Shown here piece by piece: positions 37,127 through 47,675 of a stretch of DNA of 64,000 bases (positions are counted from its first letter, which is position 1; the number at the start of each line of letters is the position of its first letter). The position numbers and the translations under genes were made by a program. The DNA lies in sequence record NC_010821.1; one strand, given 5' to 3'. Under the pieces are notes generated by a model. The model made no database searches, was not told where the DNA came from, and was given only the letters and a program-made list of their open reading frames with translations.

Positions 37127-37176
37127 CATAAAGCCCCTCCGCAAGGAGGGGCAATATGTTGTTTTTTTCTTTTATG
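37127..37176. terminator. bidirectional terminator at a convergent junction; 27-nt duplicate of 60805-60831
   Basis: CATAAA-GCCCCTCC-GCAA-GGAGGGGC-A. Confidence 0.75.
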
Positions 37177-38487: not shown

Positions 38488-39396
38488 TCACTTTAAGAAT
38501 GTACCACAGGAGGCCTTCACATCAGTTCCTACGCGTGGGATCAGCTTAACCTTAGCATCGGGTAGATGACGCTGGATAAAGCCGTGTAGGTACTTTACAT
38601 GACCCTCCACGGGTTCCTTGGAGTAGTGACCTTCCGGTGGATTGTATCGGACGATGTTCCAGTTCACTTTCAGTCCAACTTCTTTGATCTCATCAATGAT
38701 AGCTTTAACGTCACCGATGGAATCGTTCTGATCGTTAATGAATGCATAATGAATCTTAGGTGTTTTACCGGTAGCTTCTTGCCAGCACTTCAGTTCATCC
38801 AGTGCCGTTTCAGGTGCTGCCGCTTTAGGTAGCCACTGTTTACGGAACTTAGGATTCAGACTGTAAAGTGAGTAGTAGAGTTCAGGGTAGACTTCTGGGT
38901 CAGTGAACACATCAGTCAGTTTAGTAAAGCCGAACTCTTTTGGCCAGATGGTGGAGATCAGGAACTTAGCTTCCAATCCCCATTGTTCGGCCATACGCTT
39001 AAGACCACGTAGGATCTCATCGGCATTCTCAACGAAGTGTTTGTTAGCTAATGGTTCACCACGCGCCATGAAGTTGAAGTGTACCTTAGTGGCTGCACTA
39101 CCTACATGGTTATTTCGGACCATGTCGATGTAATGGTCGAATACACGTTCAGCTTGTTCGAAGTATTCCTGTACAGTAACGTCACGGGAATCCGTCTGAC
39201 CAGTTGCAGTCAACCAACACATCCTGCAAGCTTGTTTACAGCCTGTCTGAGAGCTTAGATAAACAATGAAGTAATCGTCTACCCTTTGTACGAAACGTGC
39301 TTCTAATCGCCCTGTATGGTCTTCAAACTTACGCTCGAAGTTAACGGAGCGATCTAGCTCAGATTGGTGCGTCGTGTAAATCAATTGACTCTGCAT
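38488..39396 (-). CDS. RlmN/Cfr-like radical SAM enzyme (truncated N-terminus, divergent active site)
   Basis: LSSQTGCKQACRMC (CxxxCxxC), MARGEP (MGMGEP-like), YSLY, WNIVRYNP, VGTDVKASCG (methyl-carrier Cys). Confidence 0.85.
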   Translation of the reverse strand: MQSQLIYTTHQSELDRSVNFERKFEDHTGRLEARFVQRVDDYFIVYLSSQTGCKQACRMCWLTATGQTDSRDVTVQEYFEQAERVFDHYIDMVRNNHVGSAATKVHFNFMARGEPLANKHFVENADEILRGLKRMAEQWGLEAKFLISTIWPKEFGFTKLTDVFTDPEVYPELYYSLYSLNPKFRKQWLPKAAAPETALDELKCWQEATGKTPKIHYAFINDQNDSIGDVKAIIDEIKEVGLKVNWNIVRYNPPEGHYSKEPVEGHVKYLHGFIQRHLPDAKVKLIPRVGTDVKASCGTFLK

Positions 39397-39649
39397 GGGT
39401 GCTGGTCCTCAAACGGTAAACGAATCGAATAGGTGGATAACCATTAACTGTTATGGTGGATTCATCGAAGTCTTTGTTATCGTACTCAACTGTAACTTGA
39501 TGGGGCCAGAACAACCCTTTTCTTATTTGATCTTCAATTTGACAAACTAGGTGGTAACCACGCATTGCAGCATTACACCCATTAAAGTGATCGCTGCAAA
39601 CGTGGTCAACCAGTTCGTCAAGCTTACGCTTGATCGACTCCATCTTCAA
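39359..39649 (-). CDS. small protein, module-A gene 3
   Basis: 96-aa ORF; PHQVTV segment shared with neighbours and 46675. Confidence 0.6.
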   Translation of the reverse strand: MKMESIKRKLDELVDHVCSDHFNGCNAAMRGYHLVCQIEDQIRKGLFWPHQVTVEYDNKDFDESTITVNGYPPIRFVYRLRTSTHAESIDLHDAPI

Positions 39650-47588: not shown

Positions 47589-47675
47589 TGGTGCCGGTGG
47601 TGGGCCTCGATCCCACAATCCCTTACGGGCGGCGGATTTTAAGTCCGCTATCTATACCAATTCGATCACACCGGC
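47589..47675 (-). tRNA. trnL: tRNA-Leu(TAA), 87 nt, encoded CCA, atypical T loop
   Basis: GCCGGTG/CACCGGC acceptor stem, GCGGA-CTTAAAA-TCCGC anticodon arm, long variable arm, GTGGG-ATCGAGG-CCCAC, ACCA end. Confidence 0.92.

Follow-up and report, generated by a model that had tools for sequence, protein, structure and literature searches.

The closest described relatives of gp434, a radical S-adenosylmethionine (SAM) protein encoded in a 64,000-nucleotide stretch of Pseudomonas phage 201phi2-1 DNA (record NC_010821.1; the whole stretch is called the window below), are two RNA methyltransferases. RlmN of Escherichia coli (PDB 3RFA, 5HR7) forms m2A2503 in 23S rRNA and m2A37 in tRNA, and Cfr (PDB 9P0P) forms m8A2503 in 23S rRNA. 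It was reported that SAM methylates C355 of RlmN and that the methyl-Cys radical then adds to adenine, the C355 thiyl radical being stabilised near M176 (PMC9692996). A second cysteine, C118 in RlmN and C105 in Cfr, is indispensable for resolution of the adduct, and from 2014 on its main role has been taken to be that of a general base, which deprotonates C2/C8 and triggers radical fragmentation (PMC9692996). RlmN C118A and Cfr C105A remain bound to RNA (PMC9692996; PMC2836569). Kaminska et al. found that Cfr E91A behaved like C105A, giving a primer-extension stop without methylation (PMC2836569).

In gp434, the position of the resolving Cys is occupied by Tyr, and it was found that the same is true of nearly all members of a large protein family. 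The phage 201phi2-1 is a jumbo phage of 316.7 kb, and its host is Pseudomonas chlororaphis. The window was 100% identical to NC_010821, and positions below are those of the window unless a locus name precedes them. gp434 (YP_001957153.1) is labelled 'Fe-S-cluster redox domain-containing' in RefSeq. Its open reading frame (ORF) is the sole long one at this place, running on the minus strand from the ATG at 39396 to the stop codon at 38488-38490.

Predicted active-site residues of gp434

The gene and the residues that bear on its chemistry are as follows, from the N-terminus to the C-terminus.

38488..39396, minus strand: gp434 coding sequence, 302 aa, RlmN/Cfr-like (predicted class A fold) radical SAM protein of the Tyr-for-Cys family (phrog_27142)
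39301..39303, minus strand: Glu32, equivalent by alignment to RlmN E105 / Cfr E91, Glu in 150/150 representatives
39238-39264, minus strand: VYLSSQTGC motif, which contains Y46
39259..39261, minus strand: Tyr46, codon TAT, aligned at the resolving-Cys position (RlmN C118 / Cfr C105)
39217..39240, minus strand: CX3CX2C (C53, C57, C60), radical SAM [4Fe-4S] ligands, aligned with RlmN C125/C129/C132
39052..39069, minus strand: MARGEP (RlmN MGMGEP), in which, by alignment, M110 is equivalent to RlmN M176 and R112 replaces RlmN M178
38863..38871, minus strand: S176-L-Y178 (RlmN S233-L-H235), aligned with Ser retained and His replaced by a near-invariant Tyr
38503..38514, minus strand: ASCG loop with Cys297 (38506-38508), aligned with the methyl-carrier Cys (RlmN C355 / Cfr C338)

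The residues were mapped from three alignments, namely a family profile against the Cfr and RlmN chains of the PDB, a MAFFT alignment with E. coli RlmN (NC_000913), and an L-INS-i alignment with five canonical RlmN proteins (E. coli RlmN and four further ones). Y46 fell on RlmN C118 and C297 on C355 in all three, and Y46 and C118 each lie 7 residues ahead of the first cluster cysteine, gap-free. Further equivalents of RlmN residues were E114 for E180 and N252 for N312. Thus the observations of a first-pass annotation made from the letters alone, that the cluster motif and the methyl-carrier Cys are kept, that Tyr stands at the C118 position, and that MGMGEP and SLH have become MARGEP and SLY, all held at verified coordinates. 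Among the radical SAM hallmarks, C53/C57/C60 were near-invariant in the family, and GEP, S176, N224-D225 and N252 were conserved.

Predicted fold and relation to RlmN and Cfr

Profile scores placed gp434 near RlmN but far below the family cut-offs. The RlmN model (TIGR00048) gave 66.1 bits (E = 2.6e-18, cut-off 290), with the match spanning model positions 74-341 of 355; the PRK11194 equivalog gave 31.9 bits vs a cut-off of 633, and the Cfr models TIGR04432 and NF000424 gave 37.1 bits vs 550 and 42.8 bits vs 530, respectively. The Pfam radical SAM model PF04055 scored 22.4 bits, under the gathering cut-off of 29.5, and membership in the superfamily was recognised from the motifs and the model fold. 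A single-sequence phmmer search of gp434 against the PDB gave no match, and a family profile was required; the best sequence match of this profile was Cfr 9p0p (67 bits, E 1.9e-17).

An AlphaFold2 model of gp434 from a 35-sequence alignment had a predicted local distance difference test score (pLDDT) of 90.8 and a predicted template modelling score of 0.89. Weak confidence was confined to the modelled C-terminal loop with C297 (pLDDT 54-58), which fits the flexible loop of RlmN (PMC9692996). In Foldseek, RlmN-type chains came top (template modelling score 0.76-0.78, E ~1e-15), followed by Cfr, and unrelated radical SAM enzymes had E values of ~4e-8 or weaker. By VIA-align, model residues 1-301 were superposed onto RlmN 75-360 (5hr7; Z 28.0, root-mean-square deviation 2.4 A, 275 residues). 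The Z scores were 25.7-28.0 for RlmN-type chains, 19.5 for Cfr, 17.0 for the next family (PFL activase) and 13.8 for spore photoproduct lyase. The likeness of gp434 to RlmN is therefore far beyond chance (E 2.6e-18; Z 28.0 vs 17 for the next family).

The model predicts that gp434 has the class A core fold without the N-terminal domain. The N-terminal helical RNA-binding domain of RlmN (residues 1-74) is missing from gp434, as the first-pass annotation had stated; this is seen in the start of the profile match at position 74 and in the structural alignment that begins at RlmN 75. Moreover, an in-frame stop codon lies 5 codons upstream of the ATG, which makes a longer N-terminus impossible.

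gp434 thus shares with RlmN the predicted class A fold, CX3CX2C, GEP, the Ser of the SLH motif, ND, NP, and the equivalents of C355 (C297), E105 (E32) and M176 (M110). It differs in Tyr46 for C118, Arg for M178, Tyr for H235, the missing N-terminal domain and an identity of only ~20%. With Cfr it has in common the core, the C-terminal Cys and the glutamate (Cfr E91, gp434 E32), but it has Tyr46 in place of C105 and no N-terminal domain, and nothing points to A2503 as target or to antibiotic resistance.

Conservation and distribution of the Tyr-for-Cys family

A word-indexed search yielded 1808 relatives, and an exhaustive profile search at least 419 clusters at 50% identity with E <= 1e-30, or 920 with E <= 1e-10. 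The conservation of Tyr in homologues, which the first-pass annotation had proposed as a check, was almost complete: Tyr was at position 46 in 119/119 full-length close homologues, in 66/66 intact copies from bacterial genomes and in 149/150 cluster representatives (50% identity). E32 was kept in 150/150 representatives, C297 in 149/150 and M110 in 149/151. In both the close homologues and the cluster representatives, the only conserved Cys residues were the three cluster ligands and C297. C204 of the LKCW motif, which had been named beforehand as a possible resolving Cys, was rejected, since other members have R, A, S or E there; columns 39, 233 and 234 were also rejected, with Cys in at most half of the members. 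Conservation of this kind indicates that the loss of the resolving Cys is a family-wide, selected trait.

Other near-invariant signatures of the family in its N-terminal part were SxxDxSxN at the N-terminus, E32, R34, Y46-L-S-S-Q and M110-A-R112-G-E-P, where R112 is a family-specific near-invariant Arg. Those of the later part were Y175-S-x-Y178, R185, W188, H216, N224-D225, N247, N252 and D292-V-x-A-S-C297-G. Five longer representatives had N-terminal extensions, in which no Pfam domain was found.

The sole exception to Tyr46 was a protein designated P0258, which has Cys46, and also Cys at position 106, where gp434 has His. It occurred on two phage-like contigs of one phage lineage (L140:1799-2680 and L141:2442-3323), and because it was present on both, Cys46 is probably real. 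The Tyr (TAT/TAC) and Cys (TGT/TGC) codons are one base apart. The existence of this natural variant suggests that Tyr and Cys can serve one role. P0258 could also be used as a comparison enzyme.

In a quick maximum-likelihood tree, the Tyr family formed one long-branched clade (support 99), apart from the canonical RlmNs and from gp170 of Tunturiibacter phage Tunturi_5. About 75% of its ESM Atlas clusters were viral. Named phages with the family include the Pseudomonas jumbo phages 201phi2-1, Viktualia, RVTF4, D6, Psa21 and Phabio (a subset), the Caulobacter jumbo phages CcrColossus and CcrPW, and Brevundimonas jumbo phages; T4-like metagenomic contigs carry it as well. Four bacterial genomes with a Tyr-family gene each also had a canonical RlmN above cut-off, so the Tyr family is an addition and not a replacement. 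In one planctomycete family, the gene was present in only 13/121 sampled genomes, which marks it as an accessory gene. The Tyr family is distinct from RlmN and Cfr, mostly viral, and patchy in bacteria.

Two other short phage proteins resemble RlmN. Tunturi_5 gp170 (L080:2911-3909) is likewise from a jumbo phage, RlmN-like and without the N-terminal domain, with a C-terminal SACG-M-F, but it keeps the resolving Cys (VILCLPTQ), has 24-26% identity and groups with the outgroup in the tree. The protein of Klebsiella phage 05F01 (L079:2863-3792), also short and without the N-terminal domain, has Val at the resolving position and Cys three residues on; its gene is flanked by an ADP-ribosylation gene and an anaerobic ribonucleotide reductase.

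Proposed reaction

From the fold, the cofactor motifs, the residue equivalences, the conservation and the gene neighbourhoods described below, we infer, at about even confidence, that gp434 is an active class A-type methyl(ene) transferase working through C297, in which the adduct would be resolved by a Tyr46/Glu32 base and not by Cys. As there is neither a resolving Cys nor a substitute for it, the resolution step cannot be of the RlmN/Cfr type. To this extent the earlier suggestion of a different chemistry was supported, but the support did not extend to the chemistry as a whole, for which Glu32, C297 and M110 are kept. Since the carrier Cys, the Met and the Glu are all retained and C118 is now viewed mainly as a general base, a role that a Tyr could fill, Tyr46 as base would be the most economical reading. 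Among the three options offered by the first-pass annotation, another general base was the best supported, with a stable crosslinker and a non-RNA substrate as unlikely alternatives.

The model shows a hairpin of strands 30-36 and 42-47 ahead of the cluster loop, and by register E32 would pair with Y46 across this hairpin. It is proposed that Cys297 on the flexible C-terminal loop would first be methylated by SAM. A second SAM would then be cleaved at the C53/C57/C60 cluster, and the 5'-deoxyadenosyl radical would turn methyl-Cys into a thiomethylene radical, which would add to a purine sp2 carbon in RNA, most likely tRNA. Tyr46, with activation from Glu32 on the opposite strand and perhaps from the family-specific Arg112, may resolve the adduct as a general base or proton shuttle, and at last the Cys297 thiyl radical would be reduced. 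Without the RlmN-type RNA-binding domain, substrate recognition must use the core or a partner.

Gene neighbourhoods in phages

In four relatives of 201phi2-1 (L087, L089, L093 and L091), a tRNA array on the same strand ends ~400-460 bp upstream of the radical SAM (rSAM) gene, and D6 and Phabio are similar. In 8 relatives, the gene for the RNA ligase RtcB follows downstream of rSAM at a distance of 0.8-2 kb. The order tRNA array (Leu, Leu, Ser, Cys, Thr), rSAM, small ORFs, RtcB forms a compact module in the relatives of 201phi2-1 (L087:9147-13030, L089, L091, L093; L083, phage D6; L084, RVTF4). The phages of Caulobacter and Brevundimonas encode a CCA-adding tRNA nucleotidyltransferase ~2.5 kb downstream of the rSAM gene.

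The window itself contains one tRNA gene:

47589..47675, minus strand: tRNA-Leu(UAA), the only tRNA gene called by ARAGORN in the 64-kb window, ~8 kb upstream of gp434

The array of the relatives, which includes tRNA-Leu(UAA), abuts the rSAM gene. The 201phi2-1 locus is a reduced version of the module, in which the array is gone from beside gp434 and RtcB is absent. By comparison with the relatives, the phage tRNA-Leu(UAA) would be a candidate substrate of gp434.

Gene neighbourhoods in bacteria

In 37/70 bacterial loci, mainly from Myxococcota and Planctomycetota, an AbiEii-family nucleotidyltransferase (NTase; PF08843, 76-82 bits) is encoded immediately upstream of the rSAM gene, in divergent orientation. 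A leucine-rich repeat (LRR) protein of 480-700 aa then follows in 35/70 loci, and a sulfotransferase-like protein is found in 19/70 (examples are L009-L056, such as L041:1362-6891 and L009:2111-6861, and also L003 and L005). The NTase motif RGG...D-x-D with a later KDL-x-D is conserved in the AbiEii neighbours, so the AbiEii-like enzyme is probably active. In L046, where the gene order is rearranged, rSAM and AbiEii are still adjacent. In the quick tree, the AbiEii-linked copies of Myxococcota and Planctomycetota formed one derived clade, a weakly supported sister of the Pseudomonas jumbo-phage clade; from this single clade it follows that the AbiEii linkage had one origin and has since been retained in both phyla.

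The bacterial loci showed no AbiEi antitoxin domain. A search of PADLOC-DB v2 gave no match to gp434 and no model for the rSAM-AbiEii-LRR set, and the bacterial NTase neighbour matched AbiEii models. The loci without AbiEii had no widely shared neighbour, with a weak second sulfotransferase-like match in L026 only. The AbiEii-family, LRR and often the sulfotransferase-like genes thus make up a conserved operon, divergent from rSAM, and it is conceivable that the rSAM-AbiEii-LRR set serves in conflict or defence as a module not described so far. AbiEii/MenT-type toxins nucleotidylate tRNA 3' ends. Three of the four contexts of the family thus feature tRNA genes or tRNA-end enzymes, which fits the tRNA activity of RlmN and, as circumstantial evidence, suggests that the target is tRNA.

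Immediate surroundings of gp434

gp434 lies in a leftward gene block from gp436 to gp430, and its GC content (0.46) is close to that of the window (0.453). The neighbours gp428-gp437 had no Pfam match and matched PHROGs of unknown function only. A scan for sigma-70 promoters and terminators gave a signal no higher than in shuffles. A GC-rich hairpin with an 8-bp stem (37133-37152) was seen where gp429 (plus strand) and gp430 (minus strand) converge, in the 50 bp that separate them. It is likely a two-way terminator that closes the leftward block of gp434, although the overall signal of the scan did not exceed that of shuffles.

An unannotated ORF of 96 aa with a TTG start (39359-39649, minus strand) spans the 227 bp that separate gp435 from gp434 and runs into the start of gp434. 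Compared with the ORFs that precede rSAM in D6, Phabio, CcrColossus and Marchewka, it showed no similarity, and it is therefore probably not a gene. The idea of a conserved small partner ORF upstream of phage rSAM genes was rejected, as the 96-aa ORF had no counterparts in the compared phages.

Alternative explanations

Several observations weigh against a Tyr-based transferase acting on tRNA. RlmN C118A/S mutants do not turn over, and to our knowledge Tyr has never been demonstrated to replace the resolving Cys. The N-terminal RNA-binding domain is missing, neither RtcB nor AbiEii is encoded in the 201phi2-1 genome, and the one tRNA gene of the window is distant from gp434. The synteny with the tRNA array comes essentially from one lineage, so that it amounts to few independent observations. 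In the T4-like group (L103:1887-9670 and ~17 similar viral contigs), the rSAM gene lies within a DNA replication/recombination block (terminase, gp32-like, UvsX-like, rSAM and UvsY-like genes, from first to last), the only context without a hint of tRNA.

One alternative would be a non-methylating radical chemistry on nucleic acid, in which the 5'-deoxyadenosyl radical abstracts hydrogen from the substrate and a Cys297/Tyr46 pair relays a hydrogen atom to quench the product radical; gp434 would then be a lyase, an isomerase or a repair enzyme and not a methylase. There is a precedent in spore photoproduct lyase, a radical SAM enzyme acting on nucleic acid, where a Cys141/Tyr99 relay quenches the product radical. 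The Cys/Tyr pair of gp434 where RlmN and Cfr have Cys/Cys, the family-specific changes at the SAM/substrate site (M178 to R112, H235 to Y178), the scores far under the RlmN and Cfr cut-offs, and the RNA repair genes nearby (RtcB, CCA-adding enzyme) would agree with it. The lyase, however, is similar only at the superfamily level (Z 13.8), with its residues placed otherwise and no methyl-carrier loop. The loop of gp434 (DV-x-ASCG) and its M110 are exactly as in the methylases, its closest structural matches are without exception class A methylases, and a natural Cys46 variant exists, so we regard such a relay as unlikely. It is very unlikely, in our estimate, that gp434 is a suicide crosslinker, in which Cys297 is methylated and the RNA adduct is left unresolved to give a single-turnover inhibitor of translation on tRNA or rRNA. 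Such an enzyme would serve host shut-off in the phage and, in bacteria, abortive infection, as an effector together with AbiEii and the LRR protein. It would behave like RlmN C118A and Cfr C105A, which stay attached to RNA (PMC9692996; PMC2836569), and there is no Cys at or near the resolving position; in bacteria the gene is accessory (13/121 genomes of one family) and adjoins a toxin-type NTase. Nevertheless, an invariant Tyr, and not just any non-nucleophile, together with an invariant Glu32 argues for a catalytic role. Several unrelated phage lineages carry the gene beside genes for the upkeep of tRNA function, nothing that resembles an immunity partner was seen in phages (upstream ORFs, gp428-gp437 neighbours), and there was no PADLOC match.

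A substrate other than RNA was also considered, which could be DNA (adenine C-methylation, in the phage or its host) or else a protein, for instance the AbiEii-type NTase encoded next to it. In the latter form, the rSAM protein would act as an enzymatic antitoxin, and phages would carry its gene for anti-defence. The missing RNA-binding domain, the position of the gene between UvsX/gp32 and UvsY in the T4-like contigs, and the AbiEii gene, divergent and adjacent in over half of the bacterial loci (37/70), from two phyla, with a linkage that survives the rearrangement in L046, are consistent with this. But the characterised relatives all act on RNA, 201phi2-1 has no AbiEii, the AbiEii-linked copies are confined to one derived clade of the quick tree, and we know of no DNA modification in nucleus-forming jumbo phages, which makes a non-RNA substrate distinctly unlikely. 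An equally speculative idea, improbable as it stands, is that the Tyr family is a tRNA-directed weapon or shield in phage-host conflict, with Tyr-based or non-resolving class A chemistry. As a shield, it might perform a counter-defence C-alkylation of tRNA that defeats AbiEii/MenT-type NTase toxins or other tRNA-targeting defences, and it might have been taken from, or given to, the bacterial rSAM-AbiEii-LRR module. As a weapon, it might be a single-turnover enzyme that welds itself to tRNA or rRNA.

Discussion

Databases already label the gene as RlmN-like or Fe-S protein. In full-text literature searches, we found no account of a class A family with Tyr for the resolving Cys, and no described function for phage RlmN-like genes or for the bacterial rSAM-AbiEii-LRR cluster. 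The class A methylases are defined by two Cys, and here a large natural family swaps the one that is reportedly indispensable for a near-invariant Tyr. The Tyr family therefore constitutes a natural experiment on adduct resolution, in which a general base can be set against a disulfide or a thiosulfuranyl radical. A new product or target may come to light as well. The recurrence of the gene next to tRNAs, RtcB, a CCA-adding enzyme or an AbiEii-type toxin points towards a so far unexplored layer of conflict centred on tRNA.

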